Shown here in pieces: positions 8,322 through 55,561 of a DNA stretch of 64,000 nucleotides. Numbering within the stretch: position 1 is the stretch's first letter; every line of letters starts with the position of its first letter. The DNA lies in NCBI GenBank assembly GCA_009859145.1, contig VRVR01000022.1, positions 248,001-312,000 on the forward strand. Direction: 5' to 3'. Position numbers and translations under genes: made by a program. Below the pieces are notes generated by a model. It saw only the letters and a list, made by a program, of their open reading frames with translations. It was not told where the DNA came from and searched no databases. This DNA is from Andalucia godoyi And28. Taxonomy: Eukaryota; Protista; Jakobida.

Positions 8322-8446
8322 TATGCACGTGAACCTCTCCCGTCTCTTCCTCTGCCTAGTCCTAAAACCCACAAAATGAAATTTAAATCAATAATTCAAA
8401 AACCTGGTTTTAAATAATAATCATAATACTTTTTAAAAAAAAGAAA

Positions 8447-18919: not shown

Positions 18920-19260
18920 TCCTTACAAAAACGATCCCCCTGATAAAATGTACTTCAACAAAGTGAAGAAGGAAACAACACAAGAAAGCAAGCGATAAAT
19001 CGAGAGAGAAAATCAGAGAGAAAATCCGAGAAAAAAAGTCGAATGCATGCTGGGAAAACTGGCGGGAATCCTTTTTTTTTTTTGAAGTGCTTTTGAGAAT
19101 AACTGTCGTTCCGATGCGCCTCAAGTCCTCAAACTCAAATACGTGTCCTCTTCTCAATCTAGTTTCTGATTTCGTTTTTTAAAAAATAATATATTATCGG
19201 TTGGGTTTGTGTCAGAGGAAAAAAGAAAGAGGAATAGAAAACCGTGTCGTTGGCGACGAA

Positions 19261-20247: not shown

Positions 20248-20252
20248 CAAAT

Positions 20253-20287
<35 letters not shown>

Positions 20288-20367
20288 CTCATTCGGAAAC
20301 ACAGAGCCAAGGCGAACGAGGTGGCGCAAATCGCTTCCCTTCATTTTTACAATTTGACGTTCATGCA

Positions 20368-24399: not shown

Positions 24400-24721
24400 G
24401 ACTTGCTTATTTACACCAAACACAAGACAGATAAGCCGAGGAAAAAAGAAGCTACAATTACAATGTAACAAACAAACAGTACAGAACTCAATGGACAAAT
24501 AATAATAAAAATAAAAACAAGAGAAATATATATGAATGATGGATTGATATATGGTTTGCCCTTAGGATGGATTATTGGAGTTCGGAGTTCGTGAACGAAA
24601 GAAGAGAAAAGGCACCAAATGCCCGGGTGCGCAGCGATGGCAACAAAAATGTTACAGCTGTTGGGGGACGGGGAAAGAGAGAAAGGGGAGACAAAGCCCC
24701 GAATATTGTACATGTTGACAT

Positions 24722-27427
24722 TTAGGCTTTTGGTTCGGTGGGCGGGTTCTTGTTGCCGTACAGCATGTCGATGAAGCGGACAATCAGTGCGGTCCAGCCG
24801 GTTTGATGGCTGGCGCCTAATCCGCGACCAGTGTCTCCGTGGAAATACTCGTAAAACAAGTTTAGCTTTGAATCCGCTGGCGACTGCTCATAGAGGAAAC
24901 ATTCGTGCGGATTGACCCACGCGCGGTCTTCAAACAGCTTCACATGTCTGCGGGCAAGTTCGTGGGCCGCCTGTGAAAGACTGAGAGACGTTTGGGTTCC
25001 ATCTAGTTTCGTCAGCATTACTACAAACCCGTCCTTGAAAAACTCGTGATACTTCAGAAGAGATTCTGTGAACATGTACATAGGAGCAGTCCAAATTGGA
25101 CCTCTCCAATTGGAATTGCCACCAAACATTCGGCTCTCCGAATCTCCTGGAGAGTACCCGACCACATGTTCCACATTATGAATCGTGCATCGATAAGGGT
25201 TCTTTTCGTGAAACTTCGACAGCGATCGAACGCCATACGGAGCCAAAAACTCATTTTCGTTGAACAAGTAGCCTAGCAAAGATATGAGCTTCTCTTTGTT
25301 TGCCAGCGACAGCAAGACTTTGCCGTGCTCGTGATCAAACGTCAGGTGCTGACTAAGCAGAGGTTTGTTGTGCACAAACCATTCGAATCGCTTGGAGAAC
25401 CCAGGGAGGTGCTTCATTCGGCTGAGATCAAGGATCTCCACTGCCCAGACAGGAATAAGACCGACGAGAGATCGGATTCCGACAGGTGTGAATTGATGGG
25501 ATCCAGGGAAAACCATCTGATCATAGTAGAATCCGTCTTCGGAATTCCAAAGGCCCGAGCCACCGAGAGTATTCATGGACTTGCAAATGCTGACAAAATA
25601 CTCGAAGAATCTGCTTGCCATGTCTTCATACGCGACATTGACATGATGCTGCACAGGATCCCAAGCAAGTTCCATGGCAATCGCAAGCATGTTCAGACAA
25701 AATACCCCCATCCACGAAGTTCCATCTGCTTGAATCAGATGAATGCCCGTCGGCAGCGACGACCGGTCAAAGATGGATATGTTATCCAGTCCGAGAAAAG
25801 ACGCACCGGAGAATACACTTTTCCCCATTGTGTCCTTGATGTTGGTCCAGTGCGTAAAGTTGACAAGCAGCTTTTGGAAGCAAGACTCTAAAAACGCACG
25901 ATCTTGGCTGCCAGTCATTCTATAGACCTCCAAGCACGCCCACGCATGATTGGGAGGGTTCACATCTGAAAACGCCCACTCGTAAGCCGGAAGCGCCCCA
26001 GACGGATGCATGTACCACTCCCTCAGGAACAATGTAAGTTGCTGCTTTGCAAAATGCGGATCGATTTCTGCATATCCAATGCAGTGGAAGCAAAGATCCC
26101 ACATGCAGGGATAAGGATACTCTGTGTTGTCCGGAACCGAGACAACGTCCCTCGCAAAGTAATGCAGCCAGTCCTTGTTTCGTCCATTGCGCCTTTCTGC
26201 CGGAGGATCTGGAAAGGCGTTATCGCCTTCCAGCCAACTTTCCACAACGTAATGGTAAAAGATCTTGCTCCACAAAAGGCCAGCATAAGCTTGACGCAGC
26301 ACATTGGACAGCGAGCAGTGGGCCACTCCAGAGGTGCAAAGCTTGATTGTCTTGTAGTAGTCATCCGCTTCTGCAATTCGATCCCGAAATACCGCATCAA
26401 ATCGACTCCCCCACGGAACCGGAGCACACTGGGCACAATCAAACAGCTGACAGCAGATTGTAGACGACTCCTCCGGACCCACGGTAACAGCATAATGAAC
26501 GGCTGATTTGGATCCAATCTTGTGCGGATTCACGGTGCTTGAATCTCCACGAATGATGAATTCGTGAAAGGCGTCCTTCACAAAGTCGCTCTTGTTGTCG
26601 ACTCCGAACAGCTTCTGGAAATTCGTCTCGTTCTCCGTGAACAGCGTTTCTCGAAACCCGGGATGGGAAGCATCATACGCAAAATGGAACGAGCCAAGCG
26701 TCTCATGAGCCAGGCTGAACGTGTTTGGAGTATCCTTCATCTGGCGGATTCTTGATGGTGCCTTCCAACAGCCCTCATGATCGCATTCCCAGGCCCAGGT
26801 GTTCCGGAACCACAGCTGCGGTATCACGTGTATTGTCGAAACACTGACTGGATTCCTGTTTGTGACCTTTATGCGCATGAGCACATGATTATGGTCTGCC
26901 TTTGCGTACTCGACTTGCACGTCCCAGTAGGCCCGTTGATCCATGATTTTCGTGTCGACAAGCTCGAATTCGCAGTCCTGGAGTCCGCGAGTGAGATTCT
27001 CTTGCACCAGCTGGGTGTATGGAAACTCGCTTTGCGGATACTTGTACAGCGCCTTCGCATACGAATACGTTGGCGTCGCATCCAAATAGTAGTACAGCTC
27101 CTTCACATCTTCTCCATGAACCCCTTCTGGACCCGATACCATGAAAAACCGCTCCTTCAAGATCGGATCGACACCGTTCCACAACACAGGAGCCAGGCAA
27201 ATCCGACACTCGCGATCCGTGAATCCAAAGATTCCGTCCTCTCCCCATCGATATGCCCTTGACCGAGCATGGTCATGCGGGAAGTAATTCCAAGAATCTC
27301 CGTTTGCAGAGTAGTCCTCACGAACCGTGCCCCATTGCCGCCCGCTAATATACGGACCAAACCGCTTCCAGTTGCAACGCCTCAGACCGTCCTCCTCCAG
27401 CCTCTGAATCTCTGCATGGTGCTTCAT
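24722..27427 (-). CDS. GH63/MGH1-like glycoside hydrolase (YMR196W-like family)
   Basis: Motifs WKRFGPY...RQWGTVREDYS, ARSRAYRWGEDG, HGEDVKELYYYLDATP, EYPYPCMWDLCFH, PAYEWAFSDVNPP, GGNSNWRGPIW and FYEYFHGDTGRGLGASHQTGWT. Likely ATG at 27427. Confidence 0.88.
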   Translation of the reverse strand: MKHHAEIQRLEEDGLRRCNWKRFGPYISGRQWGTVREDYSANGDSWNYFPHDHARSRAYRWGEDGIFGFTDRECRICLAPVLWNGVDPILKERFFMVSGPEGVHGEDVKELYYYLDATPTYSYAKALYKYPQSEFPYTQLVQENLTRGLQDCEFELVDTKIMDQRAYWDVQVEYAKADHNHVLMRIKVTNRNPVSVSTIHVIPQLWFRNTWAWECDHEGCWKAPSRIRQMKDTPNTFSLAHETLGSFHFAYDASHPGFRETLFTENETNFQKLFGVDNKSDFVKDAFHEFIIRGDSSTVNPHKIGSKSAVHYAVTVGPEESSTICCQLFDCAQCAPVPWGSRFDAVFRDRIAEADDYYKTIKLCTSGVAHCSLSNVLRQAYAGLLWSKIFYHYVVESWLEGDNAFPDPPAERRNGRNKDWLHYFARDVVSVPDNTEYPYPCMWDLCFHCIGYAEIDPHFAKQQLTLFLREWYMHPSGALPAYEWAFSDVNPPNHAWACLEVYRMTGSQDRAFLESCFQKLLVNFTHWTNIKDTMGKSVFSGASFLGLDNISIFDRSSLPTGIHLIQADGTSWMGVFCLNMLAIAMELAWDPVQHHVNVAYEDMASRFFEYFVSICKSMNTLGGSGLWNSEDGFYYDQMVFPGSHQFTPVGIRSLVGLIPVWAVEILDLSRMKHLPGFSKRFEWFVHNKPLLSQHLTFDHEHGKVLLSLANKEKLISLLGYLFNENEFLAPYGVRSLSKFHEKNPYRCTIHNVEHVVGYSPGDSESRMFGGNSNWRGPIWTAPMYMFTESLLKYHEFFKDGFVVMLTKLDGTQTSLSLSQAAHELARRHVKLFEDRAWVNPHECFLYEQSPADSKLNLFYEYFHGDTGRGLGASHQTGWTALIVRFIDMLYGNKNPPTEPKA

Positions 27428-27856
27428 GTCTTTATTTTCCTCCCCCTCCTGCTTCTTATTCCTTTTTTTAATAAAATGTTTCTTTCTCTTCTTCTCTGCC
27501 AGCCTCGATTCTTGGTAAATGCAAAAGGGGGTTTCATACCAGAGTGCGGAACTGTTCAAGCTGAGATTCAAAAATAGGAAAGGACCAAATTAAAATGAAA
27601 AAAAACACGACGGGCAATACGCTCCGACAACTTCCACTTTCGAGAAGCTCTGTTCGGGAGCTTTTTTCGCCGGATGTCGGTCTTTTTTTTTGTCGGACAT
27701 TTCACAAGCACTCAACTAGCCTCGAATGGGCAACCCCCCGACTCGGCCGCTCTCCCCTTTCTCCGATGCTCCGCTGGTTTCCTTTCTCCACTGTTGCTCT
27801 TCGCGTTGGCTGCGCTTCCTGGGGTGAGGGGAACGCACACGGCTGGTGGAAAAAAA

Positions 27857-29632
27857 ATGTTTGATTTGCGACGTGTTGACGCATACATCACGTTGCAAGG
27901 AGCGGATTCTGCAACTTTGTGGTCTTTCAGCGCGGATCACCAAGACTGGACATTCAATTCGTTGACGCTGCCTGATTCGGCAATTGCATTCCGCTACGCA
28001 ACGTGCGTGTATGTATGCGAAATCGATGCATTTGTCGCTCTGTGTCTCCTGGAGGTTGTGCATGGCAGACTTTGCGTATATGGACTGGATTGCTCGCGTC
28101 GATGCTTCTCAGATCCTCTATGCAGCTCGTTTGCCCTGTCATCATCAAGTCCGCGGTTCCAGTGCGTTCCTTGTGCATCAGGGTTTTTGATACTGGATGA
28201 TTTTTGCAGTGTCCATTTTGTAGATTCCCGCGGCCATCTTCATGCGCTCTCATTGTTTCCCGAGTTCTCGCACGTACACGGAATGTTGGCTGTCTCTGGA
28301 GAGCAGTGGGCGTACGTGAGCGGCTTCTCAAATAACGAACCCAAGTTGCTACGAATCGAGGTGTCCCCATGTGTTGGGCTCTTGGCTAAAGTACCGTGCA
28401 TGGAGATCAATGTCAGAAACCAGGAACGGAGTGATCCAGCATCGCCGAGACATATCCGTCTGCCAGTGGGACTGCATGCGCCAAATTTGCTGATGTTGGA
28501 CGATTCTCCGGCGCTGTCCTACGTTGACGCTGCGACTGGCAAGACAGTCGGAAACTCCGTGGATCTCACGTCTTTTGGATTCTCGGACATGTCCATGCTT
28601 ACGATAATACAGCTTGTTCAGAATTCCGTGTGGTGTTTTGGCCTGGTTTGCAGGGCCAGCAGAAAGGCTCTTGTCATCGAAGTGCAGACGCTGTCTGTTT
28701 TGTCAACCTTGGAAAATGTGCAGGCGTTGTTGTTGAATTCGCGACAGGACCTGTTTGCGATTGAAGCAGGCCAAGTCGTTGGCAGGATCCAAATCCCACT
28801 GGTTTACTTTCCAAAGTCTGTCAATCCTTCCGTACGTTCTCTCTCGATCTTCAGTTCACAACTACGGCAACAAAGACTGGCGGAAGACGCGACGGTGTCG
28901 CTCAAACGGGCGATCATGAATAGATGGGTGCAATGCATTGACGAATGCAAATCCACGTCGAAAAGGAACAGCTTTGTTTTTGAGGACCTCTTGCCCGTCG
29001 TGGTTGAGCATGAACATGCCCCGCTGCAGCAAGCGGCTCAACCAGGTGTCCGTGCCGACCATGTCTTGAAGATTGAGAGTTGTCGCGGATGGGTCCGCAG
29101 CTCCAATCCCGGAAAAACAATAATTGTTTCGTTTTCATTGGGTTCACAGATTCCTCCGGAAATTTTAAAATCGGTGGATGTCACAATCCACACCTTGTTT
29201 CCTTGCGGGCGTCAAGAAACGTGCATTCACCCGACAGGCCATGTAGTTTGCTGCTGGACAGATGGCAGTGCTGTCGAGGACGTCCAAGTGCAGCTGCTTG
29301 TATCTTCGCATACCAATTCGTTTCGTGCAGTCCGCGAAGTCATCGCTCTGGAAACAACTGTGGCGCTTCCCAGCCTGCTACCGTGGTTCTGTCCGGTGAG
29401 CCTGCGTCTCAATAGTGTTGATGCTGTTGAGTTATTGATGAAGACACTCAAGTCCGCTGACAGTCGCTTCAGCATCCGGTCTGTCAACAGATCTAGCAAA
29501 CAAGTGGAAGCAGTCGTCGAAGCCACATCCTTTCCAATGCTATGCCAGGCCTTAGGGGCACTGGCGGCCGCAACATCTGGAGGAAGACTTGGAACAATGA
29601 TTGTATCCGACCAAACGCTTCAGCGGAACTGA
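27857..29632 (+). CDS. Uncharacterised protein, possibly FANCB/FAAP100-like (propeller, coiled coil, beta-sandwich)
   Basis: Long ORF with ATG at 27857. Beta-rich N-terminal half, then a helical segment QLRQQRLAEDATVSLKRAIMNRWVQCI, then a beta-rich domain. Family assignment rests on weak architectural resemblance only. Confidence 0.6.
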   Translation: MFDLRRVDAYITLQGADSATLWSFSADHQDWTFNSLTLPDSAIAFRYATCVYVCEIDAFVALCLLEVVHGRLCVYGLDCSRRCFSDPLCSSFALSSSSPRFQCVPCASGFLILDDFCSVHFVDSRGHLHALSLFPEFSHVHGMLAVSGEQWAYVSGFSNNEPKLLRIEVSPCVGLLAKVPCMEINVRNQERSDPASPRHIRLPVGLHAPNLLMLDDSPALSYVDAATGKTVGNSVDLTSFGFSDMSMLTIIQLVQNSVWCFGLVCRASRKALVIEVQTLSVLSTLENVQALLLNSRQDLFAIEAGQVVGRIQIPLVYFPKSVNPSVRSLSIFSSQLRQQRLAEDATVSLKRAIMNRWVQCIDECKSTSKRNSFVFEDLLPVVVEHEHAPLQQAAQPGVRADHVLKIESCRGWVRSSNPGKTIIVSFSLGSQIPPEILKSVDVTIHTLFPCGRQETCIHPTGHVVCCWTDGSAVEDVQVQLLVSSHTNSFRAVREVIALETTVALPSLLPWFCPVSLRLNSVDAVELLMKTLKSADSRFSIRSVNRSSKQVEAVVEATSFPMLCQALGALAAATSGGRLGTMIVSDQTLQRN

Positions 29633-29701
29633 GAAATAACACACAAAATAGATATACTTTCGCGAGGTCATCTTGCGGGTGGAAGCTTCTGAAGCGAAAT
29701 C

Positions 29702-32700
29702 TCAGTCGTTGGTCCATTGGTTCGTACGAATTGGCGAGGCAATTCCACGGAGATCAACGGATGAAGGGTCTTTGCCCTCTTCTCGGAGGAGTTCTTGGTA
29801 TAACCTTACACTCTGCTCCAGCGCAGACAGCATTGCGAAGTTCGATTTGCCAAAAAGCACAGCTCTCTGAAGAACTTCCATGACTTTGAAATAGACATTG
29901 CCCAAGCGGACGACCGTTCCGGATGCCGTTTGTGCAGGATCAAACGGACCCACGGTCAAGGTTGTGCTTTTGATGAAGATTCTTTCCGAGATGCAAAGAG
30001 TGTCGAAGCGTGGAAGATGGCGGGATTCTTGTTCGTGCATCACGGCAAGAGCGCTCTCAATGTTTGGAACGAACACAACATGTCGGAGCAGTCGCTCCAC
30101 GACTGCCATGTCTCGTCGGCTGTGCAAGGGTTCAAGAATATGGGTAGCCCTTCGACATCCATGCCGGCGCACGTACTCAGGCAGCGGGAATTCCTTGTCC
30201 GGATGCCCAGACCCAGAAATATGAACAACTGGTAAACGACAAGACAAGCACCTCTTATATTCGTCATCCGTTCGAGCTAAATAGCGTCCCAGCACATCCG
30301 AGAACTGCCAGCAAAGTAGGGACCCGAGTTCCGCAATCGACTCGATTGTTTCATCAAGCTCGCTTTTTGGGGCACGAAGAACGACAATATCCACCAGTTG
30401 ATCTATTCCAATGCAGTTCTTATGTTTTGGCCCAAGCCGAGTAAATGGTTGCATCTTCGAGCGTAAACTTGCTCGTAACCGTTGCAGCTTGTCCATCGCA
30501 GAACCCAGGTCGGCGCTGGACGAAATGGAGAATTGCTCAGCCGTAATCGATCCCGTAATATCATTCAGAACGCGCTGGAGGACGGCGAAGCGGTACCGAA
30601 GATTGTAATCCGATCTCCGGAATAACTCACATGCATCAACCGATGTGCTCTCCAATGACGTGCGCACGTAATCTGCGAACACCTGTACCAAGTCCACTTC
30701 CACAGTCCACATGTGTGGAGCAAAAAACCGCCGACGCTGCTCCATATATGAGACCTTGAAAACGCGGGGCATGTCGCACAGCAAACTGTCAGAGTGGAAA
30801 ATGAAGACTGGACGGTCATCCTTGACTTCTTGCAAGCGATAGGCGATAACATCACAAATCACGTCCACAGATTGCTGAACAATATGCCGATCTGCGAAAT
30901 CGAGATACCCTCCTTCAATGATGAGAGAAACCTCCAGAGTCGGCGCACAGCTTCCTTGGTCAGCACCAACTAGAAAACGTGCCTCAAGACGTCGAACAAA
31001 GCCCACACCATCTGCCATGCATCTCTCCAACAGTAGTTCCGTTGGTGCACCACCACCCAAACTTCGAAGTTTTCTTCCAGTGCGGCTTTCCGCACCTCTG
31101 CCGTTCTCCAGCACGCAGAGAGAGAACTGAAGGGCAGCTTCCTGTTGATCGGGATCAAAAACAATGGTAACATCATCGACAGCGCATTCCCCATCAACAA
31201 ATTTCGACGAAACCGTAATCCTGTCAAAGGGAAATATCTTGCAATGGACACCTAGTACAGCAACTCTCATATCATTCGCTACACCAGACGTGACAGAATT
31301 CCCACCGACATCGAATAGCCGGAGCTTCAAACAACGAAACGCAAACATCGCTTGCACAGGGAGTCGGCGCATTTGGGGATGATCTTCCAGTTTCCAACCG
31401 TCGATTTCGTAGAGGCGAACCGTACTAGGAGATCCAGGTACTACATTCACATACAACGCATCCGTTGTCAACGAAAATTCATCGAAACTCAACCGGAACA
31501 CAATTCCCACGCAACCAACATGGGCCACAAACGAAGGACATGAAAGCACTATGCAGTAGCCACCAATCTGAAGGATTGGATTTTCTGGTAAAAAATAGTG
31601 GTCGCTCTGGATGTGGCCCGCTGATTGCACTGCAAAATGGGAAAACTGAGAACGCACGTCCGTGAACGGTGTTCCCACATCACTGTCCACCATCTGTATT
31701 TTGGAGGGTGCATCCGGTGAGAACGGTAATGCATTTCCAAAGCGGTCCGTCATTCGAACGTACATTTCTGGGAGCCCTGTCCCACTGGCCACTTCGGGAA
31801 TCTGAGCGCTGGCAGCGTCGACGTCTTTCCAGGAAACAAGCAACCGTGACGGCAGCTCGGCTCTGAGATGAAAACTCAGATCAATCCCAAATACGGGTAT
31901 CAATGCATTTTTGAACCGGAGCGAAATGACGTACGACCCGTAGTTTGTGAGCGTAGGGAAAACGGAATCCACAAGATACGACGACAATGAATAATAATCG
32001 ACTAGTAGCTCACCACCGTTGATTGCGTGCTCACAAACTACGATTCCATTGCACAGTGCTTCCACACGCGGACTATCAGAATCGTGAAACATAGCGAAAT
32101 CCCCATCGGCAGCGAGCAAACGAAACCGTATGTCCGGTATCCTGGACCCAACAGGCACAATCCCAGTGAACTGCATGCTAGGAAAGGAATCCGATGTGAC
32201 ATCCGAATCTGCCTTCAGAATATGGAACGGGTCCTCGATGGCGGCAGTGCAGGGGTATCGCGAAGCTTCCACTAGGACAGTAAGAGAACACGCTGCTACT
32301 TCTGCTGTTGCTGCTGTTGCTTCTCTGTCATTTTGTCGGCATTCAATCTCAAGCAGAAATTCGCCGTTAACGGGAGGCACAAGAGTGCGATATTCTGGCA
32401 AACAGATATGCACGACTGAGGAAACGGGAAAGGGAACTGCGGCTTTGATCGTAGGGAAGCAGAGAACAGCGCTACAGGGAAATGGTACTGGGCTTCCGAA
32501 TCGATCGAATGCTGCCACCGTAAATGGAGGAACAGACGTTCCGGACCGAATTCGAGGCATTTGGTTTGCCGATGTTCCTGAGAATTGCGCCCGAATCGAG
32601 CAAAAAGTACCTGCACAGACGCTGCACGACAACTCCGTCGAGCCCAGGAGTTCGAGGCTTTCATTAAAGCCCGCAAGCAAACCACTGTCCTTTTCCGCGG

Positions 32701-35700
32701 GTCCGAAGAGGTCAATCTCGAGAAAACAGGATTCCGATTCCCCAAAAAAGGAAAAGTGATCACGTTCGTCTCGGAAGAGAATGCACAAGCCGTGCATCAC
32801 ATACTGAGATTCATGCGATTCATAAACAAAGGATACTGGAGGCATTGTCAAATAAAACCGGGGTGATTTGATGCGAAGTCGAACAGCCTCGTCGGTGAGA
32901 ACCGGATCTAGTGAGATGGCATTATTCATATCATCGTAGATCTTAAGGCAGAGTGTAAATGGAACATCTACAGACAACTGAGGTTGCGGAACACTGGCCA
33001 TTATCCGACGAACAACGCTGTTGGTGACATGGACGGCCAACTCAAGATCCCCACAGATGCTTTCCTCCAGATCAGAAAGCAGGAATGACGATTGTTCGAG
33101 AACGTTACGCTGCAATCTGCTCTTAAACACAAGAACATAATCGGCGCAGCCGTTAAATTCCAAGACATGGGATGCATCTGCTACACACTGAAAAGGATAC
33201 TCTTTGATGATATGTCCTCGAACAAACTTGCCGACCTCGGAGTTCCATGAAGATTCGTACACTTGTAATGCTACCATGAAGGGAGGGTCGTCCAGAGGCG
33301 AGCAAAAGTCGGGCAACCGCAATAGCGATCTCGGAGACGAGCATATCCTCTCTCCAAACTCCCGCGAGCAGCAAAATCGCGTGGTAAAATGGTACGTGCC
33401 TTCCGACAGAGTGCACGCGCCCGACGTGCAAGAGTTCGATGAGACACGACGAGTTTCCTTGGTCATGATTCCGGCCTGAAGAACGCTGGAGAGGACCAAT
33501 CGGTGATCTGGAATGTGCATTCGAAAAAACGAAAACCGAGCCTCTGCCTTCGCTCTGTCAAAACGCCTTCCGTTCAGCAATAACTGAGAAACAGCAACGC
33601 GGTAGATGCCAGCATCATGGAACAAGTCCGCAGGAAGCAAGCGGATATTTGCAATCGCATCAGCGGCCTCAATCGTTTCTGCTTGCGATGCCGACCAGTT
33701 GTCCACAGTGAAGGACACGCATTGAATGGGAAATACACCGTTCTCGTCCACATAGAAAATCTGATTTGAAGCTGATCCGGAAGGATCATCACCGACACAA
33801 TCCACCGATCGAAGAGGAGCTAAATTAAATGCACTTCCACGAAGCACGCAGCGACTCCATGACCCGCTGGGACTCAAAGGGCTACCACTATGAAACCTCG
33901 AAAGTTCAGCAAATCCATCTTCGCGAGCATGACATTCTCCCGCCCACTCGTAAACCGCCGGTTCCCATGGAGCTACTGCGATTCCCGCGATATCAAACAC
34001 TGTCAGCAGATTGTCAAATCTGGAGGAAAACTTGTCTATGCAGAGCGGGAACTCGCCATGGAAGAACAGCTGGCCACGGATACGCTTCAGTGCTGGAGCT
34101 GGAGCCAATGCACTGTCGCTTCTGAAGTGCGATGGCAACAGGTACTGATATGGGAGCAGTTTGCCGTTCCAATACACTTCGCACACATATCCACGATGTG
34201 GGCAGGAGTCCCAGTCAGCCAAACACGTTCTCTCGTCATTTACAGCGTCTTCCACGCAATCTAGATCCAGGCGCTCCGACGGATCCGGAGGCAGTGACTC
34301 CTCGTTGAAAAACACCGGAAAGTACTTGAGAATAATTTTTGCACAACGACAAAGGTCAAGTACGAGTGGTGCGCACGACGACGCAGACATGAGACCTCGA
34401 TCATATGCATTTGGATGGCTATTGCAGAGCTGGCGAATAATGGTGTTTCCTTGCACATCGGCACCTCGTACCGATATGTTGAGTGGAGGAATCGCTCTGC
34501 AAGGTCTTGGAACGGCCGGTTTCAAAGCGTTGGAGCGTGGAAAGCCACGATCATTCAAGTAATAATAGAAGGCGTGGGCCAGTGAGGTGGAATACGAGTC
34601 AACAAGTGAAATGATGCATTGGTTTAGGAGCTCAGCAGGGTCGAACAAGTGCGTGGAGTCCCTCTGAAGAACTCTGCTGAATGGCATCAGCATCTCCATG
34701 CGAAGTTTCGAAATAACAATGAGGGTGTACGAGGAGCATCTCCGATGCATGTCCAGCCACTGAGCCGATAGACCCGTAGAATGCTCTTCTTCTGAAAAAC
34801 AAGACGGATCTTCTGGAATGATCTCGTTCAGCGAATTCTCGAATGCTCGAAACGAGTCTGTCGGAAAGGCCATCAGCTTTTCTGCATCTATTTCCACCGA
34901 GTATGTAGGATACCCTTCCTTCCTTGTGATAACTCGAAGCAATCGCCCAAGGGAAAACGCAGCACGCTTCGCTCCCACTCCAAACACGCCCAGCCTTCCG
35001 TTTGCAAAAAACGGAAAGTCTTGTGGATCCCGAGTCTGTGCCTCTCCACGATGAGTCGGGATCAGTTCCTTTGGCACTGAAAATGCAAAGCACTCAATCA
35101 ACTCGCGGTCTGTCATTCCGCATCCGTCGTCAGAAATCATGATAAACCCAACATCCCGCTTCTCTTGAAATTTGAGAGGACCCGGGACCGGATGAAACGA
35201 AACTTCGATATTCTCAGCGTTTGCTTCGATCGCGTTGTCAATAAATGCGGACAAATAGGAATGGGTCGGGTGCTTCCACGCGTTCATCTTTGGGATTGGG
35301 CGTACGTCAAAAGGATGGACAAACAGGATGGGATTCAGTCTGTAGCTTGAAAACCCAAACGTAAACTCTCGACACTCTTGTCCGACGTGCCGTACAATGA
35401 TGACGACGTTCACATGATTGCGAAACCACAAGAAATTCGCATCTGTGACGGTCATGTATTCAAATACAGCATTTTGCACTGATTCTCCATCCTTTCTTTC
35501 GTCGTGACGGTCGCGATCCATACCTGGATCACTGCCTGTGCGTGCGTCTTCGTCCTCGTCGTCATCAACCGAGCAGCCAAATCGGCTTTTGTGAAGCCTT
35601 GCTACGCACTCTACATGATCAGCATTCGCTGGATTTCCTCCATCCTTTTCATATGCAGACAACGCACACTCCAGCAGATGTGTCAAACTGCGCATAAACA

Positions 35701-35758
35701 AAAGATTCCCAAACAACCGGTCCACAGGCGCCAGAATGCTCACAGCAATCGGTCGCAT
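29702..35758 (-). CDS. SMCHD1: SMCHD1/GMI1-like protein (GHKL ATPase, Ig-like repeats, SMC hinge)
   Basis: GHKL motifs AFIDNAI, ISDDGCGM and GVFGVGAK. Transducer segments LAHAFYYYL, EVYWNGKLLPY, RIRGQLF and YEWAGECH parallel SMCHD1 LAHIYHYY, ECFWNGRLIPY, RISGALF and WLKDCH. C-terminal hinge-like SLLCWQFSDVL and LLRHVVFVPNIESA. First ATG at 35758. Confidence 0.85.
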   Translation of the reverse strand: MRPIAVSILAPVDRLFGNLLFMRSLTHLLECALSAYEKDGGNPANADHVECVARLHKSRFGCSVDDDEDEDARTGSDPGMDRDRHDERKDGESVQNAVFEYMTVTDANFLWFRNHVNVVIIVRHVGQECREFTFGFSSYRLNPILFVHPFDVRPIPKMNAWKHPTHSYLSAFIDNAIEANAENIEVSFHPVPGPLKFQEKRDVGFIMISDDGCGMTDRELIECFAFSVPKELIPTHRGEAQTRDPQDFPFFANGRLGVFGVGAKRAAFSLGRLLRVITRKEGYPTYSVEIDAEKLMAFPTDSFRAFENSLNEIIPEDPSCFSEEEHSTGLSAQWLDMHRRCSSYTLIVISKLRMEMLMPFSRVLQRDSTHLFDPAELLNQCIISLVDSYSTSLAHAFYYYLNDRGFPRSNALKPAVPRPCRAIPPLNISVRGADVQGNTIIRQLCNSHPNAYDRGLMSASSCAPLVLDLCRCAKIILKYFPVFFNEESLPPDPSERLDLDCVEDAVNDERTCLADWDSCPHRGYVCEVYWNGKLLPYQYLLPSHFRSDSALAPAPALKRIRGQLFFHGEFPLCIDKFSSRFDNLLTVFDIAGIAVAPWEPAVYEWAGECHAREDGFAELSRFHSGSPLSPSGSWSRCVLRGSAFNLAPLRSVDCVGDDPSGSASNQIFYVDENGVFPIQCVSFTVDNWSASQAETIEAADAIANIRLLPADLFHDAGIYRVAVSQLLLNGRRFDRAKAEARFSFFRMHIPDHRLVLSSVLQAGIMTKETRRVSSNSCTSGACTLSEGTYHFTTRFCCSREFGERICSSPRSLLRLPDFCSPLDDPPFMVALQVYESSWNSEVGKFVRGHIIKEYPFQCVADASHVLEFNGCADYVLVFKSRLQRNVLEQSSFLLSDLEESICGDLELAVHVTNSVVRRIMASVPQPQLSVDVPFTLCLKIYDDMNNAISLDPVLTDEAVRLRIKSPRFYLTMPPVSFVYESHESQYVMHGLCILFRDERDHFSFFGESESCFLEIDLFGPAEKDSGLLAGFNESLELLGSTELSCSVCAGTFCSIRAQFSGTSANQMPRIRSGTSVPPFTVAAFDRFGSPVPFPCSAVLCFPTIKAAVPFPVSSVVHICLPEYRTLVPPVNGEFLLEIECRQNDREATAATAEVAACSLTVLVEASRYPCTAAIEDPFHILKADSDVTSDSFPSMQFTGIVPVGSRIPDIRFRLLAADGDFAMFHDSDSPRVEALCNGIVVCEHAINGGELLVDYYSLSSYLVDSVFPTLTNYGSYVISLRFKNALIPVFGIDLSFHLRAELPSRLLVSWKDVDAASAQIPEVASGTGLPEMYVRMTDRFGNALPFSPDAPSKIQMVDSDVGTPFTDVRSQFSHFAVQSAGHIQSDHYFLPENPILQIGGYCIVLSCPSFVAHVGCVGIVFRLSFDEFSLTTDALYVNVVPGSPSTVRLYEIDGWKLEDHPQMRRLPVQAMFAFRCLKLRLFDVGGNSVTSGVANDMRVAVLGVHCKIFPFDRITVSSKFVDGECAVDDVTIVFDPDQQEAALQFSLCVLENGRGAESRTGRKLRSLGGGAPTELLLERCMADGVGFVRRLEARFLVGADQGSCAPTLEVSLIIEGGYLDFADRHIVQQSVDVICDVIAYRLQEVKDDRPVFIFHSDSLLCDMPRVFKVSYMEQRRRFFAPHMWTVEVDLVQVFADYVRTSLESTSVDACELFRRSDYNLRYRFAVLQRVLNDITGSITAEQFSISSSADLGSAMDKLQRLRASLRSKMQPFTRLGPKHKNCIGIDQLVDIVVLRAPKSELDETIESIAELGSLLCWQFSDVLGRYLARTDDEYKRCLSCRLPVVHISGSGHPDKEFPLPEYVRRHGCRRATHILEPLHSRRDMAVVERLLRHVVFVPNIESALAVMHEQESRHLPRFDTLCISERIFIKSTTLTVGPFDPAQTASGTVVRLGNVYFKVMEVLQRAVLFGKSNFAMLSALEQSVRLYQELLREEGKDPSSVDLRGIASPIRTNQWTND

Positions 35759-36136
35759 GATGAACAATCGCACCAAGTCTCACCTCGTCGCCGCCGTCCC
35801 AACAACAACAGCATGAAAGTTCAGCGCATTCGGCGCAATACCCTGGAGCAACAACGGCCAAAAGAATGCGGGAGAAACAGGAAGTGAATAATTGCTATAG
35901 TCATGCATAATAATAATAAATAAATAAAATAAAGGAAACCCAAAAACAAAACAAAACAACAAAAAACGCGGCGAACCGTAGTCGGTTCCGTTGAACCTCA
36001 AACGTGTTTCTGGACTTTCGCTCAGAAGCCGCCGAAAGCTGTGCTGGTGTTCCTTCCGTCCTCTTTTTGTTCTACTTCTGCATATGCGACATTCGCTTTC
36101 GCTCACAGGGATAGGGACACGGATACTCGCACAATC

Positions 36137-36543
36137 ATGTCATTCTTTTCATCAAAGCCCGCTGCGGCGACTGGAAAATCAGAGGCCGATGAAATTGTTG
36201 GACGGATCCGCGAAGAAATGAACCAGCAAGCTGCGCAGGATCTCTTTCAGCGAGTCGCAGAAAAGTGCTTTGCAAAGTGCATTTCCAAGCCTGGATCAAA
36301 GCTCGATGCAAATGACCAAGCGTGCCTTGCAAGATGCGAAGACCGTTACATTGATGCAATGAATGTCATTTCACAGGCTCTCCAGGACCGATCAAATACC
36401 GTACGTGGCTGTTATTTCCCTCTTCCCTCCTTCTTTTATTATTATTATTCTTTATTATCATTAATATTAATAATTCTTTGCTGTTTTTTAATATTTAATT
36501 TATTATTTTAATATCCGGATGACAGATGGAACAAGATTCTTAA
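36137..36543 (+). CDS. TIM13: Mitochondrial small Tim chaperone Tim13 (two exons: 36137-36400 and 36526-36543)
   Basis: Twin CX3C motif EKCFAKCISKPG...ACLARCEDRYIDA. Predicted phase-0 GTACGT...GACAG AT-rich intron at 36401-36525 gives the C-terminus DRSNT-MEQDS*. Confidence 0.85.
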
Positions 36544-36828
36544 TCATGATGCATGACGATGACAACGTCCGCGAGACACCCCCCCGCACGCTGCGCCACG
36601 GACAAGAAGGACAAAAACAGCGAGTAAAGCCCAACACCATCGACAGTCTGTTATTGTCATTATCATTATTATCATTATTGTTATTTTTTTAAAAACTACT
36701 TATTCTTGTATCATTTTGCGGATTAGACAGTTTCCAACAAGTTCGTGACTCCAAAAACCTCTACGTCCATTGCCTGGTGCAACAACAGCAAGCGGAACTC
36801 ATCGCGGCACACGGTAGCACAGCGCGAC

Positions 36829-37578
36829 TTACGCAGTTTTTCTCATTGGTGGGGATGCAAAGCGTCTTCTGACGTCCCTGAGTTCCGCATCCGTGGCTGG
36901 ACCAAACGATCCAGAGGATTCCCGAACCCAAATAGCGCGGTCTGTCTGCGTGGCCGTTGGCGAAACATCGACGAATCGGTAGCGAACACGCGGAGTCATG
37001 TCATTCTTGCAGAGTGCCGTTGCAAACTGGTCCTCATACGGCACGAGCGGCTTCCCGCGGATCGCAGCCAGCTGATCCTCGACAGCAGTCGCAGCCGACT
37101 CGGGCGCCGCAAGATCCTCGTCGCCGACAATGTACATGCGACCCGGAGTCTTCAGTCCAGCAACCTCCTTCTCCATCCTCTCCTTGTCGTCCGAGACAGC
37201 ACCAGCACCACCCTTCTTGGCTGTGCGCTCCTGGTACTTTGCGACAAACCGGACATTCGTGATTGACTCTGCAACATCAAGCGGCGTCTCCACAGGAGAA
37301 AACGGCGATTTTGCAATTGCGAGAATTCCTTGGATACGGGCTACAGAGCATCCAAACTTTTGAGAAAGTGCAGTCAGTGAGTTCACGGCCGGGTTTGATG
37401 CGTGAAGCTGGACAATCTCAGCTCGAGCTGCCGGAGAAAGCATGACAATTGTCTCGGCATTATTCACAGACGATGCCGAGGCCGATGCCGACGATGATGA
37501 CGATGACTTGGACGACTTGTCTGCAGATGACGACGACGGGCGCGTCGCGGCAAAACGAACCAATAGCCGACGAAACAT
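36829..37578 (-). CDS. Mitochondrial ribosomal protein mS45 (yeast Mrps35/Bot1 family)
   Basis: Presequence MFRRLLVRF. Helix-turn-helix LSPAARAEIVQLH...LSQKFGCSVARIQGIL. C-terminal RYRFVDVS...IWVRESSG motif. Confidence 0.7.
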   Translation of the reverse strand: MFRRLLVRFAATRPSSSSADKSSKSSSSSSASASASSVNNAETIVMLSPAARAEIVQLHASNPAVNSLTALSQKFGCSVARIQGILAIAKSPFSPVETPLDVAESITNVRFVAKYQERTAKKGGAGAVSDDKERMEKEVAGLKTPGRMYIVGDEDLAAPESAATAVEDQLAAIRGKPLVPYEDQFATALCKNDMTPRVRYRFVDVSPTATQTDRAIWVRESSGSFGPATDAELRDVRRRFASPPMRKTA

Positions 37579-37819
37579 GGCTCCTCGGGGATGAAACTCA
37601 GCTTCTTCTTTTAATGTCTAATACTTTAATTAAAAAAAAAATGAATTTAAAAATGAATTTAAAAAGAAATTTCTAAAAATTAAAAATTAAAAAAAAGAAA
37701 AAGTAATAATGGCGTCTCCAATCCATCTTGGAAACAGAAAAAGGGCGATAAAGTACGTAAGGTGATCATGCGCATGTCAGCCTTTCTGTGGGATACGCAT
37801 TTTTACGTTACTTAATTGC

Positions 37820-40800
37820 TCATGGTACGCGACCGGACTCGATCATTTCTGCATATTCGCGAGATTGCAAAAAGAGAGGGAACATGGACTGCTCCATGTC
37901 GCGTCGGACCTCTTCCACAGCCGAATCAAAAAGATTACGAGGAGGATTGCTGGACGACGCTTGGTACAATGATAAGATGTGTCGCCGGGTGGCTTCGTTG
38001 ATGTTGATCGTATCGAACGAGTCGAGGGAGATGAATCTTTCAATGATCACACGAGACTTCAGCGCAGACCGGGGTACAGCGCTCTCTTGCTGGAACTCGC
38101 GGACAGAATTGTAAAAGTTCAAACCATCCGGATCAAAATTGTTCTCCACAAAAGACTGGAAATACTGACACATGTGGCGATCATTCAAAATCATTAGCAA
38201 CGCCGATGCAGAGGACTTCGCATTGGCGGACGATGACGAGCGAGCATTCGACGCCGATGACGAATGGTGATGATTAGCGTGCTGCAGCTGTTTCAACGGC
38301 ACTACCGCTTCCTCTTCGTCGTCATCCAGCACAATCTCAATCTCATTCTTGTTCGCTTCCTGCGACGACCGACTCTGCGACGTCGGGGCAGCACGCTGAG
38401 GCGCTGCGGCCTCAACAGAGGCTTCCTCTTCATCATCATCCGGATTGAATTTGTACGCCGGAGGAGCAACTACAGAAGAGGTCAAAGATGGGGTTGGCTG
38501 TTGTGGCGACGGCGGATGCTGAGTTGACACGGGCAGGTCGCGCTTCTCCAGGTTGAGACGTAGCAGCTTCTCTGAAATCTCCCTTTGGAAGGGAGAAGCC
38601 GAAGAGGAACTGTTGGATGCGCTAGGAGACCCAGGAGACAGTGGCTGGTTCGCGTGAGAGCGAGGACGGGGCATGCGCTCTTGAGATTTCGAGAACGATC
38701 GCTCGCGCTTCACGCGCGCAGATACTGCTGCCACGCGCGGTGCCAAAGCCTTTGGAGACTCTGCGGCGCCGTCGGACAACAAATTCGGGGATACAGGTCG
38801 GAGCGAGACTGCCTCCTTGGGAATTGCAGACGACAAATTCGGGTCGTCAAACTCACGAGACAGGAATAACACGGCAGCCTGCAGAGCATCCACCGTCGGT
38901 TCGAGCATTTCCGAAAACAAGACGGCTCCATCTTCCACAACCGCATCATCAGAATCGCGAGGAAGAGCAACCTGCAAAAGAAGCAAGGCGCTGGCGCGAA
39001 CGCGCTCCGCAGACGATGCGTATCGGCTGCACCAGCTCCAGAACTGCTGATCCAACCGGGAGAGCAAAGGCCGGAATGCAACAACAAGAGTTGGCCGGTA
39101 TGCTTCGCCCATCGATTCAAGCAGCGAGCGTGTCCATCTGAACAGCATCTCGAGCTGCAAGGAGCGCTGGTCAAAGATCGGAGAACGAGCACCGAGGGGC
39201 GGCAAAATGACTCCGAGAATTTGTCCGATGTACAGCCACATAGGAGACGAGGCGTCATCCCCCAGAAGACTCATAATAGCGGAAGCCAAGCGCTTCGAGA
39301 AAGTCTGCGATGACAAGCGACTGGCTGGATCCTGCGAAGCAAATGCCCGCAGAGCCTTGATTGCTGAGAACCAGCCATCAACGATGTCTGGCGACAGCCC
39401 ATCAATCGTCCCTTGATGCTGCTCCATGGCAAATGCAACATCCAGGCATACGCCCTCAACATCTTTTCTATTCCCAAGAGACAGTCGAAGAATTGATGGC
39501 GTCAGGGCAATCAACGTTGTAACATACTGGAAGACCGTGGGATGAATGGATGCACAGGAAGACGGGACCACCTGGACATACCGAGGAGAAAATGCTTGCG
39601 CAAAGGTTACGAGTAGCCGGAGTGCCAGAGGCTCGCATTCATTTCCGACATCCGCCAATGCCGGAAGAAGAAGCGGCTGGATTCCATCAAACAAGGACGT
39701 TGCTGCGCTTGACGATCCCAGAGAACATACGGGCACTTTCCAGTCCGCGACCAAGTCGATTCCATTCGGTCGATTCATGTTGAAGAATGTTTCGAAACAG
39801 ATAGAATCCTGTGCAATCGTGTCGAGCAGGGGAATTGCGCTGCGATACAAGAGCTGAGAAGCAGTGACCTGCGACGGCTGCTGGGAACGCTTGACGACGG
39901 AATGCACAAAAGAACGCATTAGAGCAATCGAGGAGGAGAGCATTGCAGGGCTTTCATGCAACACGTTACGCTTGGAAAGGTCCTGTGCTGCCGCGGTAAG
40001 AACGCGCGCACACTCAATGGCTCTTAGGAGGGAGGGAGCAAAGGCAGACTCACTCGTACCCAGCGCAAGAATCTTCCAGAGCAGCCTGCGCTTCGTGGTG
40101 GAGCGAGGTTTCGCACGCTCCGCTTTTCGCAAGGACCGCTCTGCCGCTTGAATCGCCCGAAGCAGGTGCGTCTGCACCAAGAACAGCACTCGGGAATTCA
40201 TCGGTCTCAAGACCGAACGAAAGACTGCCAGCGCCTTCAAACAGATGCGATGATGCGCATGCACGGCATGATCTGGAAGAACGACACGCGATGAGGATGG
40301 GAAAGCAAACTGCAGGGACTCATGCCCCAGCAGCTCCACAAAGTACGGAGACACTGACTGGGAACTTCCAGACATCGTCTGGACCAGCACTCTGACAAAC
40401 TCGTCTACAAACACCACGGGGCCCTTGGACGGATCCACTTCGCTACTCGACCATGCGAACCGGACGTTCGGCTGCTGCAGCAGGAAAGCATACGATCGTA
40501 AAGCCGTTGCACGACTTGCTTCTGACCCTTGAAATTCCGACGCTTGCGCCATCATTACATTGCTGAGGAACATCCGAACCTGGCTGGCATCAATATGTCG
40601 GTCGTCCGCGTGGATAAGCGCAAACAAGATGCACACATGAAGACGTTTCTGCAAGGCCGCAAAGTGATTCGTATCGCAAGCGAGATCCACAAGAGTCTGG
40701 AGGACAACCGCACAGCGACATCTCCAGTGCTGAAGAGCCTGATCAACAGAATCAATATGTCTGCGGCGTGCCGCTGCCACAAAGTTCTTCACGAACTCCG

Positions 40801-43800
40801 CACGATTCGGCTTTTCAGAGACAACAACGGCAGCCTGCGATGCAGATGATGATGAAGCTTCTGCTTCAGCACCAGCAGCACTGTTTGTCTCGGCTTTTTC
40901 ATCCTTGATGACTGCAGCCTGAGCAGCATTTTCAACATCCGCCACAGAGCTCAGAGACGCTGCCGCTGCTTCAGTCTGCGCCTCGGACTCTGCTGCATGA
41001 GCAACCAACTCTGGAGCACTGCAGACCTCGGACGGCTTTTCAGTTTCGAATTGCTCCTTGTACGCAGCAGCAGCCTGTTCACGAGCAATGACCTTGCTGA
41101 AGTCTCCAATGCATTCGCGGTAGCGCTCCGCGCTGAGTTCATAAACAAGTGGCAGCACAACTGCGTCCGCATGCTGGTGATACAAGAACGCAAGAATCTC
41201 CGCAGCAAGTGCTTTTCCACTCTTCTGCATTGCATCATTATCGTTCGCAAACTCCAAACCTGCGGAGACATCGACGAGAATGGACACAACACGAGGAAGA
41301 TTGACCTGCTCCTCATCCTCCGCCAGAGGGGCTTCAGCAAACGACTGCCACATCTTTCGCACTTCGCTGGCGGCTCCATTGACCGAAAAGAAAGTTGTGC
41401 TCACCGACAACAACGTAGTGACCATGTAGGTCGAGTCCTTCGCGTATGTCGACAATCCAATGTTCCCAAGCCACGGGGTGACGATAGGAATCATCCACGC
41501 ACAGGGTTTGCGGGATTCGATCATTCGCATAAAAGCGTCCTTCACAATGGTCAGCGACAACGGCTTCAGCTTCAAGTTCGATGCCAGCAATCGAGACACC
41601 AGAGAGGCGTGCTTTCGTACAGACTCGATATGTCCAGAGGAGAACACCAGACGGAAATACTGGAGATCGTCCAGCAGGGTAGCAGCACGGAAGATCTTCA
41701 CGACAATGCACAACGATTCGTAAGCAGCCAGGTGAATCTCTCGCGCCTCATGATTCAAGAACCACAAGAGCAAGACAATCACCGAAGACAACACATCATC
41801 GGATAAATGAATACGACTCTCAAGGGCACCAATGTCAATTTCTGGGAAAGCGACGTATGTGTTTTGTGTGAACGCAAGAATGAGGTCGTGCACTTGACGA
41901 TGCTCGTCTAGACCACTCAGCGGGGCCGGAGGTGCATTTCCAAGCGTGGACTCAAAGCCAGAGGCATCAAACTTTGCGGGAACAAATACTCGGGACAGAG
42001 CTCGAAGCAAGGCACACCGATGAGCTTCTTCCTCAGCAGTTGAATCCTTGTCCAAAGAGTCGTACATGACCTTGAGCAACTGGTGCAGCAAGATGGCAGA
42101 GTTGTTATTCAGAATCAAGGCGTCAATCACATGATACCTCAAATATTCCAAATCGATCCACTGATCCAGCTTTTCGTTGCTCTCCTCTAAAATACGACCA
42201 AAATGCGGGACAATAGAAAGAGCAATATGCGCCTCCTTCACAATAGCAGACGCCAGCACGTCCATAGTAGACAACGTCGATTGTTTGACAGCAGCGTCCT
42301 TTTCTTTGGACTGTACGAGCGTCGCCGCCTGCGAGCACCGCGGATCAAAAGGAGAAGCCTGTCGAATCCGGCCGATCGGCAACAGCATCTGCACAAGAAG
42401 ACGTCGAAGCTCCACAGTGGACTCGGGAAGCACAGACAAAACCTGCTCCAACGACACAATCAAATCAAAAGCTGACACCAATTCGACTACCGCAGTAGCA
42501 GCATACTTGGACACCGGGCCACGGTGAAACGACGAAATGCGACCGACGTCCTCAAAGGTGATTGCTGTTAATCTCTGCCAACTCTGAAGAATCATTCGCA
42601 GGGCGGCGTCGGCGTTGGACGGCAAAACGTTGAACGCCACATCGCGCATGACCGGGAGAGAGAGCAACACGAGGCGATCGCCGTTCTTCTTGCGCATCTT
42701 GGACAGCGATTGAACTGAAGACTGCGGTACAGACTTGATCACAGGAGTCGATGATCCTCCACGCTCCTCGCGAATACCAAACAGGCGCTGCAAAACAGAC
42801 AGCGACAGCGACGAATGAGTAGATGCCAATGCAAACGAAGCGGCGTAACGCACCCAAGTGACATCAGCAGTAAGCAGCGGTAGCACTGTTTCCACCAGGG
42901 AATCAAAGAACGCAGATTCCGGAACAGAATCTGCTCCAGCCCGTTCGGCTGTGGTCTTCGATCCAGGGGCTTCCTCGACTTGGTCTGAGAACGAGACATG
43001 CTTGCGTGAGTCTGACGAGGAAAGAGGGGTGCCCGGCGCTGCCGCTTCCGGTTCCGTCTTCTCTTGGACGGGAGTCGATCGCTGAACAGAGGTCGAAGAG
43101 AATAAAAAGCAAAGCCCCCAAAAGAACATCAAGGCGTAATGAGACCCAAAAATACCTTTTGCCTTATTCTGCTTTTCCGATTTCTGCAATTGCTCTTCGC
43201 TCAAAGGCACTTCTGGTAGCAACGCAAGGCGTTTCAAGACTCGATCACGAGCCAATCTGGCGATATCGACCTTGACATCACACAACAGTTCACGAAGAAC
43301 GTACCCATATAGCAAAGTGTTGTCAGTATCCAATGCAGCAAACAGCGGAGCTGGCTCTGATTCCATTTGGTCCTGCAGAACCTTGAAGTACGGGTCGGCG
43401 ACTGCATTCACACGATACGCATTTTGAAGCTCCGGCGTAGAATGCACGACAATCGGACGGTCAACGACGATTCTATTGTTTGCATCATCGATCAGACACT
43501 TGTTGAACGCACGAAGAACAAGTTCCTTCTGCCACTCCGATTCTAGTTTCACGGGCAGCCGCTGGCGGACCTGAGAACTGGCCATGGCTGCTACTTGCTC
43601 CAGAACACGAAGGGCGAGACGTCGTACGACACCAGAGTGATGTGCGAGGAACGGCAAGCAAGACCCGTAAATCTTGTCAACCAAAGCATCAGAAGGCCCA
43701 TTTGTTGATGAATAGTCCGATGAGCGATGCCAGAGGTTCAGAAAACACAGAACGTTGTCCAGCAAGGTAGAGACGCAGGATTCGGAAGCATATGCGTCGT

Positions 43801-46180: not shown

Positions 46181-46707
46181 TCTAGATCTTTTCTCTGTGT
46201 CGCGCTCTTGACGTCTGACCAAAGACTAACCAACAAAAAAAGACGACGAGAAACTAGCCCACAGAAAAGAAAGAAAAAAGAGACGAAAAAGAGAAAGGGA
46301 TGAAAATATTATTACGCAGAGGACGAAACTAACACTTTTAAAAAAAGAGACGAGAAGAAGTAGGAAGAAGAAGAAACAAATAGAAGATGAAAATGCAAAA
46401 CAAAATAAAATACGATGAAAAGGAATACACATAAAACGAGAAAACCTTTTTGCCAAGCGAGAGGAAGACGATGTGGGGCAGCGGGGCCTTTCGTGGGAGC
46501 ACGGTCGACCGTTGAATAATAGCAACACGTCATTGTCATGCAACACGTTTTGTTTCACAGGGAATTCGTGCTTACGCACGCTCGGCCAAAATTCAGCCGG
46601 TGACACAGGCTCTGCATTTTCGACACTCTTTAACGCAGCATCCGTGGCCATCTATTCTATCATTCGTTGGTTTCACTTTTTTGGTTTCACTTTTTTATTC
46701 AAATAGG

Positions 46708-55324: not shown

Positions 55325-55561
55325 AACGTAAAGACCAAACATTTATTATTATTATTATTATTTGATCGCCCTCGTTTTTGGCTTTCATTTGTCTGTTTTC
55401 CCTCTTCTTCTCTGCTCAAGATTCGACGCATGCATTCCTTCTGGAGCAAACAGACATATCAGGCAAGTGCATTTATTTACAACAACAATAACAACAACAA
55501 CGACAAAAAAAAAAGAGGGAGAGAGCACGACGGAAAGGTCTGTTGCCCCCGATTCGCTGAG

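Follow-up and report, generated by a model that had tools for sequence, protein, structure and literature searches.

A stretch of 64,000 nucleotides from the genome of the jakobid Andalucia godoyi And28 (GCA_009859145.1, contig VRVR01000022.1, positions 248,001 to 312,000 of the forward strand; this whole stretch is referred to below as the window) carries on its minus strand a gene for a SMCHD1-like protein in which the catalytic glutamate of GHKL motif I, equivalent to Glu147 of human SMCHD1, is naturally replaced by alanine. Domain searches and alignments identify the gene as a real, full-length and fast-evolving member of the SMCHD1/GMI1 family in this organism. Moreover, database sequences show that A. 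godoyi has two SMCHD1-like genes: one with the complete catalytic set (ANDGO_04363), and the window gene, which is without the general base. The favoured reading, to which we give a probability of about 0.6, draws on the engineered E147A mutant of SMCHD1: the window gene would encode a SMCHD1-like duplicate that can bind ATP but has little or no ability to hydrolyse it, and that acts as a latched clamp or regulatory partner.

The gene occupies an open reading frame (ORF) at 29702..35776 (-) with 2,024 open codons. Its assignment to the SMCHD1 family, which an initial annotation made from the sequence alone had proposed, is supported by matches to two Pfam domains: HATPase_c_3 (PF13589; aa 171-293, E 1.2e-13, 51.7 bits against a cut-off of 25) and SMCHD1_S5 (PF22899; aa 475-577, 33.2 bits against a cut-off of 27). 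In addition, a phmmer search of the PDB returned a single sequence match, 6mw7, the ATPase module of human SMCHD1 (E 2.5e-11, query aa 163-578). An AlphaFold2 (AF2) model of aa 95-640 was of low confidence, with a mean predicted local distance difference test (pLDDT) value of 47.6 and values of 70-86 in the GHKL core; its best Foldseek matches were four 6mw7 chains (E ~4e-11), followed by GRP94, Hsp90, TRAP1 and MORC. The 6-kb ORF is free of stop codons and its motifs are conserved, which argues against a dead gene, and a pseudogene reading was rejected. The coding sequence and the elements of the ATP site are as follows.

29702-35758, minus strand: SMCHD1-like coding sequence; first ATG at 35758, 2,018 aa plus stop, no intron evident.
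34025-35272, minus strand: GHKL ATPase and S5 transducer module, aa 163-578 (phmmer to PDB 6mw7; Pfam; Foldseek).
35222-35248, minus strand: motif I helix AFIDNAIEA, with the Mg-coordinating Asn175 at 35234-35236, equivalent to human Asn151 (Asn invariant in the family alignments; PMC6620310).
35246-35248, minus strand: motif I catalytic position, codon GCA, Ala171, equivalent to the water-activating human Glu147 (alignments; the syntenic orthologue P0001 has GAA).
35114-35131, minus strand: motif II, DDGCGM (DxGxG box), aa 210-215 (D210, G214 and M215 are invariant columns).
34967-34984, minus strand: motif III, FGVGAK, aa 259-264, the ATP-lid end with its phosphate-binding glycines (G260, G262 and K264 invariant).
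34724-34726, minus strand: motif IV, Thr345, equivalent to human Thr320 (invariant column; role from PMC6620310).
34031-34033, minus strand: motif V, switch Lys576 in the transducer, equivalent to human Lys525 (invariant column; register from the 6mw7 alignment and PMC6620310).

The alanine codon lies at exactly the coordinates that the initial annotation had given. The minus strand from 35262 to 35221 encodes HSYLSAFIDNAIEA, its codons reading cat tcc tat ttg tcc GCA ttt att gac aac gcg atc gaa gca, and three independent alignments agree in placing this codon at the E147 position. In the phmmer alignment, Ala171 falls on an alanine of 6mw7 (offset 18), that chain itself being the E147A mutant, and Lys576 falls on Lys525. 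In MAFFT alignments with 12 and with 18 relatives, the Ala171 column is otherwise occupied entirely by Glu, and an ungapped BLASTP alignment with ANDGO_04363 sets SAFIDNAIEA opposite AEFIDNSIEA. Motif I is covered by 31 of the retrieved relatives; the residue is Glu in 30 of them, Asp in one (P0025, a protein of 444 aa) and Ala in none. A metagenome scan with a motif I pattern that requires Glu, and is blind to Ala-bearing relatives, gave only distant GHKL loci with at most 31% identity over most of the match, and these were not used.

The remainder of the ATP site is retained. The DDGCGM and FGVG motifs are intact, as had been read initially, and D210, G212 and G214 of the DxGxG box are all kept. 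Near-invariant columns, taken as those in which 11 or more of 12 relatives agree, number 39 in the ATPase module, and the query retains 33 of them. Two of the six differences, N211D and S257G, are also present in ANDGO_04363; three more, F344Y, R533K and V572L, are conservative; and E171A is the sole radical change. Because no other conserved column is radically altered, the alignments identify E171A as a specific loss of the general base within an otherwise conserved ATP site, and not as part of a general decay.

A second, catalytically intact paralogue, the possible existence of which had been raised by the initial annotation, is indeed present. ANDGO_04363 (P0024; Andalucia godoyi according to its EukProt label) is a protein of 2,010 aa that retains Glu, DDGKGM, FGLGLK, the motif IV Thr and the switch Lys, so that all five ATPase motifs are intact. 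It resembles the query in species, length, the derived DDG (N211D), Gly257 and the NxIEA sequence, but differs in keeping the Glu and in that only the GHKL core is significantly similar (33% identity over 116 aa). Neither an S5 nor a hinge domain was found in ANDGO_04363 by Pfam.

When 1.84 billion representative proteins were searched exhaustively with HMMER, using residues 1-1,194 of the query, 32 matches were obtained, and about two thirds of these (20) have lengths of 1,900-2,800 aa. Most of the full-length matches fall within 1,900-2,300 aa; the query has 2,018 aa. The named matches include annotated SMCHD1 proteins, such as that of sea urchin, as well as proteins from Volvox, Heterostelium, the foraminiferan Nonionella and the jakobid A. 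godoyi itself. On the evidence of these matches the SMCHD1 family is not confined to vertebrates and plants but is widespread in eukaryotes, and a protist member is therefore not in itself new. The top match was the protein designated P0001 (27% identity, E 1.2e-23). In a neighbour-joining tree of the ATPase module, which contains long branches and should be read with caution, the query and P0001 group together with 98% bootstrap support and ANDGO_04363 joins them at 75%.

P0001 is encoded on two contigs of environmental origin (JGI metagenome 3300042934 and SRA run SRR35185192; G+C content 0.495). Its gene lies at L065 6008-12472, and L065 1-19054 and L064 1-21100, compared with window 19201-46222, share with it an 8-gene block. 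The order of genes around P0001 is RGS, MRP-L20, small Tim, nucleoside hydrolase, SMCHD1-like, unknown, a second unknown of 144 aa, RapGAP and kinase, of which the nucleoside hydrolase and the 144-aa gene are absent from the window; for the shared genes, order and orientation match window 46222..19201. This conserved gene order identifies P0001 as the positional orthologue of the query in a fairly distant uncultured relative, which is probably a jakobid. Identity between the two blocks is 60% for the kinase, 49% for RapGAP, 47% for Tim13, 39% for MRP-L20, 27% for the RGS protein and 21% for the SMCHD1-like protein, the last being the fastest-evolving gene of the syntenic block. The query and P0001 are nonetheless collinear over aa 103-1940, or ~1,840 aa (E 6e-41, BLASTP).

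At the catalytic position P0001 has the codon GAA (Glu), as opposed to GCA in A. godoyi. As the syntenic orthologue carries the Glu, this comparison dates the loss to after the split from the P0001 lineage, and the loss is thus recent and lineage-specific. P0001 also departs from the query in its other motifs: motif II reads DNATGM, the first Gly of DxGxG having become Ala, and motif III reads YGRGAK as against FGVGxK.

The consequences of this substitution can be considered in the light of what is established for SMCHD1. In the human protein, Glu147 activates the hydrolytic water, Mg coordination falls to Asn151, Lys525 serves as the switch lysine and Thr320 constitutes motif IV (Pedersen et al., PMC6620310). 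The E147A mutant has lost hydrolysis but keeps ATP binding and dimerisation, and its crystals contained a dimer with ATP bound (PMC6620310, PMC7458401). Within cells the mutant is kept in a chromatin-engaging state and is unable to consolidate at target sites (PMC13434421). The literature therefore agrees with the description of E147A as an ATPase-dead SMCHD1 mutant on which the initial annotation had relied. In the A. godoyi protein, one A-to-C substitution in the middle base of the codon (GAA to GCA) has removed the motif I Glu. The other residues known to hold Mg-ATP and to sense the gamma-phosphate are retained, namely Asn175, those of the DxGxG box, the end of the FGVGxK lid, Thr345 and the switch Lys576. 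By analogy with E147A of human and mouse SMCHD1, the protein would most likely still bind Mg-ATP and close its N-terminal GHKL gate. Hydrolysis would be very slow or nil, resulting in a nucleotide-latched clamp or a regulatory partner and not a cycling ATPase, and catalysis and cycling would be left to the intact paralogue ANDGO_04363.

Like human and mouse SMCHD1 (6MW7), the query has an N-terminal GHKL domain with a SMCHD1-type S5 domain, a length of ~2,000 aa and a probable C-terminal hinge-like region; the motif I Asn, motifs II-IV and the switch Lys are conserved, and residue 171 carries the same change as the laboratory E147A protein. The two differ in that the alanine is natural in the query and engineered in E147A, in that sequence identity is only ~20% and is limited to the first ~600 aa, and in that the query has no detectable ubiquitin-like domain, a hinge that is missed by Pfam, lost GX6GX2GG glycines and no basic C-terminal tail.

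In sequence terms, the query combines the features by which a pseudoenzyme is recognised, namely a conserved fold, the loss of an essential catalytic residue (E171A) and an intact paralogue (ANDGO_04363). Partnerships between GHKL proteins in which one ATPase is weakened or missing are found in MutL-alpha-type heterodimers, in TOPOVIBL, and in the pairing of the hinge-only Arabidopsis protein DMS3 with MORC6. In these systems, as apparently in the A. godoyi pair, one partner or paralogue loses catalytic competence after duplication and the other keeps it. However, degeneration in the known systems usually hits several motifs or a whole domain, whereas the query loses the general base alone.

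Several points weigh against ATP binding with little or no hydrolysis. The claim is drawn from sequence and analogy, and the codon from the assembly. The N-terminal model, at its mean pLDDT of 47.6, is too poor for the active site to be inspected for a substitute base. The DNATGM motif of P0001 suggests that the whole orthogroup may have a relaxed or altered nucleotide site, and may not simply be binding-only. Finally, ANDGO_04363 is very divergent and is without a Pfam S5 domain, and its own activity is assumed.

Three rival explanations were weighed. It is rather unlikely that the protein still hydrolyses ATP, either because the general base comes from another residue or from a partner, or because slow GHKL turnover is not strictly Glu-dependent in this lineage. 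Such residual activity would fit with the apparent constraint on all of the other catalytic elements, including the switch Lys, and with the very slow turnover of SMCHD1 in any case, the wild-type protein being a slow conformational ATPase with a kcat of 0.6 per min (bioRxiv 10.1101/2025.07.08.663435). An acidic residue, Glu178, is also located at Asn+3 of the same helix; however, it occurs in the Glu-bearing orthologue and paralogue too (NxIEA), so it is not a new compensation and was rejected as a compensating base. Exchange of the catalytic Glu for Ala abolishes activity in MutL, GyrB and Hsp90. The equivalent exchange equally abolishes that of SMCHD1 (PMC6620310, PMC7458401, PMC13434421), which argues against residual hydrolysis in the A. 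godoyi protein.

Alternatively, the nucleotide site could be wholly dead and the protein a pseudoenzyme of the scaffold type, with no binding or use of ATP and with the motif conservation being residual. The rapid divergence of the gene, which shows 21% identity to its orthologue where most neighbours show 39-60%, and the damaged DxGxG box of P0001 are in line with this, and there is a precedent in the extensive degeneration of TOPOVIBL GHKL domains (bioRxiv 10.1101/2022.05.08.491100). Against it, the 33 of 39 near-invariant positions have been kept at ~80% overall divergence, and include every ATP-lid Gly, the Asn and the switch Lys. Such retention is difficult to account for unless selection still acts on nucleotide binding, and a dead site is considered unlikely.

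A more ambitious proposal is that an old jakobid duplication gave rise to a hydrolysis-dead, ATP-latched copy that is now the obligate asymmetric partner of ANDGO_04363. We regard this as improbable, and a MutL-alpha-like division of labour of this sort is not described for the SMCHD1 family; if true, it would represent a natural separation of the ATP-binding step of SMCHD1 action from the ATP-hydrolysis step.

Lastly, it is very unlikely that the Ala codon reflects a mistake in sequencing or assembly, or a polymorphism of the strain, and that the true protein has Glu: although GCA is one base from GAA and the orthologue has GAA, the genome and RNA-seq data are reported to be in excellent agreement with very few, mostly silent, single nucleotide polymorphisms (PMC7050145), the published gene sequences match the window exactly, and an error hitting this one base is far less likely than a real substitution in a fast-evolving duplicate.

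ATP binding with poor or no hydrolysis remains the favoured account of the N-terminal module. The rest of the protein, beyond the elements of the ATP site, is laid out as follows.

30659-33841, minus strand: middle region, aa ~640-1700, a probable Ig-like array; collinear only with the orthologue P0001.
30455-30598, minus strand: long helix predicted ahead of the hinge-like region, aa 1721-1768, which may be a coiled-coil arm (AF2 residues 2-49, pLDDT 62-80; low overall confidence).
29816-30160, minus strand: divergent hinge-like region, aa 1867-1981 (hhalign).
29948-29989, minus strand: SERIFIKSTTLTVG, aa 1924-1937, at the position of the SMCHD1 GX6GX2GG motif, with only the last Gly kept (alignments).
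29780-29878, minus strand: predicted long helix after the hinge-like region, aa 1961-1993 (AF2 residues 242-274; low overall confidence).

At the C-terminus, the initial annotation had noted a degenerate hinge glycine motif. The degeneracy holds, and SERIFIKSTTLTVG is present as was stated; the reference motif needs correction, since that of SMCHD1 itself is GX6GX2GG and not the canonical GX6GX3GG (PMC7458401). P0001 has KERQFISSTTRTGG at this position, with the terminal GG kept, and a divergent hinge motif, [KS]ERxFIxSTTxT, is common to the query and P0001. An independently made C-terminal pair alignment of these two proteins matched the family hinge profile in hhalign with P 5.4e-4 and a score of 34.3, as compared with a mean of 14.4 and a maximum of 26.8 for 60 column shuffles used as control. 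The hhalign register is close to that of the initial annotation, with the same SERIFIKSTTLTVG on the glycine motif and a start offset of ~2 residues.

Other approaches to the same region gave negative results. In a Pfam search of the C-terminal 400 aa, SMC_hinge (PF06470) was absent from the query at E<=10, and it is present in 11 of 19 aligned family members. With a hinge hidden Markov model built from the other members, the query and P0001 scored no better than shuffled sequence, and a phmmer search of the PDB with the C-terminal region produced a chance match only. An AF2 model of aa 1720-2018 (mean pLDDT 51.0) displays long helices flanking a small alpha/beta core; it had no significant Foldseek match, with SMC hinge entries appearing only at E>1. 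Overall, hinge homology is weakly supported, and a diverged hinge at the C-terminus is likely from the profile comparison. Hinge glycines are also partly missing in the Heterostelium and green-algal members. Because the degeneracy is found in the Glu-bearing orthologue and in amoebozoan and green-algal members as well, these alignments indicate a clade trait that is unrelated to the E-to-A change.

In the middle region, Pfam searches with separate pieces matched no domain model; scattered D-x-x-G-N/S motifs there agree with the SMCHD1-family consensus. Residues 95-160, at the position of the pre-N ubiquitin-like/strap segment, align loosely with the family, with no Pfam match and a model pLDDT below 50.

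Around the SMCHD1-like gene, the window genes are eukaryotic, compact, almost intron-free and on alternating strands, a layout that fits the published description of the A. godoyi nuclear genome (PMC7050145). Two of them match Table S1 of that paper exactly: uS9m (_06340) is identical at 289 of 289 positions to the window ORF 5756..6625 (-), and the coding sequence of Tim13 (_06366; window 36137-36543, plus strand) agrees with the table including its intron, exon 1 spanning 36137-36400 and being followed by a GT..AG intron of 125 nt (36401-36525) and then by a second exon, which is short. These matches fix the species as A. godoyi, a member of the Discoba; a Giardia, kinetoplastid or oomycete origin was rejected on their strength and in view of the mitochondrial genes (uS9m, Tim13, MRP-L20) nearby. 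Between the divergent SMCHD1-like and Tim13 genes is a short spacer in which a T-rich tract (ttttttgttgttttgttttgtttttgggtttcctttattttatttatttattattatt; 35900-35990) lies upstream of the SMCHD1-like gene on the minus strand; it may be a shared promoter region for the two genes. On the other side, a 652-aa ORF (27674-29632, plus strand), without a Pfam match, runs towards the SMCHD1-like gene, and only 70 bp separate the two stop codons. The gene at this position in the relative encodes 489 aa with no detectable similarity, and the 652-aa ORF is for this reason probably a fast-evolving orphan gene.

The two blocks differ further in gene content. A GH63/MGH1-like glycosidase gene (24722-27571, minus strand), located between the unknown gene and RapGAP, has no counterpart in the relative, and the inosine-uridine nucleoside hydrolase gene of the relative (L065 4829-5806) lies between its small Tim and SMCHD1-like genes. 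The RGS-bearing protein (37820-46222, minus strand; 2,800 aa) combines a weak N-terminal MOR2/Furry-type match with a C-terminal RGS domain, which is unusual, and its RGS end is also on the contig of the relative (27% identity). Elsewhere in the window, a tRNA-Arg (TCT) gene at 8446-8520 on the minus strand was found by ARAGORN and Rfam (64.8 bits), and is the sole RNA-family match in the window. Two ORFs overlap on opposite strands, at 55430-56581 (plus) and 55562-57025 (minus); the plus-strand one is probably spurious, since a domain (TPH, E 6e-17) occurs in the minus-strand one alone.

The natural loss of the general base in a SMCHD1-family paralogue is not a new system but a modest curiosity, and its practical weight is limited by the fact that pseudoenzyme paralogues are common and that the organism is without genetics. 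SMCHD1 is studied for its involvement in X-inactivation and in two diseases, type 2 facioscapulohumeral muscular dystrophy (FSHD2) and the Bosma arhinia microphthalmia syndrome (BAMS), and the separate roles of ATP binding and ATP hydrolysis in its loading onto chromatin are an active question for which the engineered E147A protein is the main tool. A wild protein that carries the E147A-type change with all else kept, beside an intact paralogue, is a natural experiment on this point. It suggests that the ATP-bound, non-hydrolysing state may be useful in its own right, and shows that the SMCHD1 family has been duplicated and specialised in a free-living jakobid.

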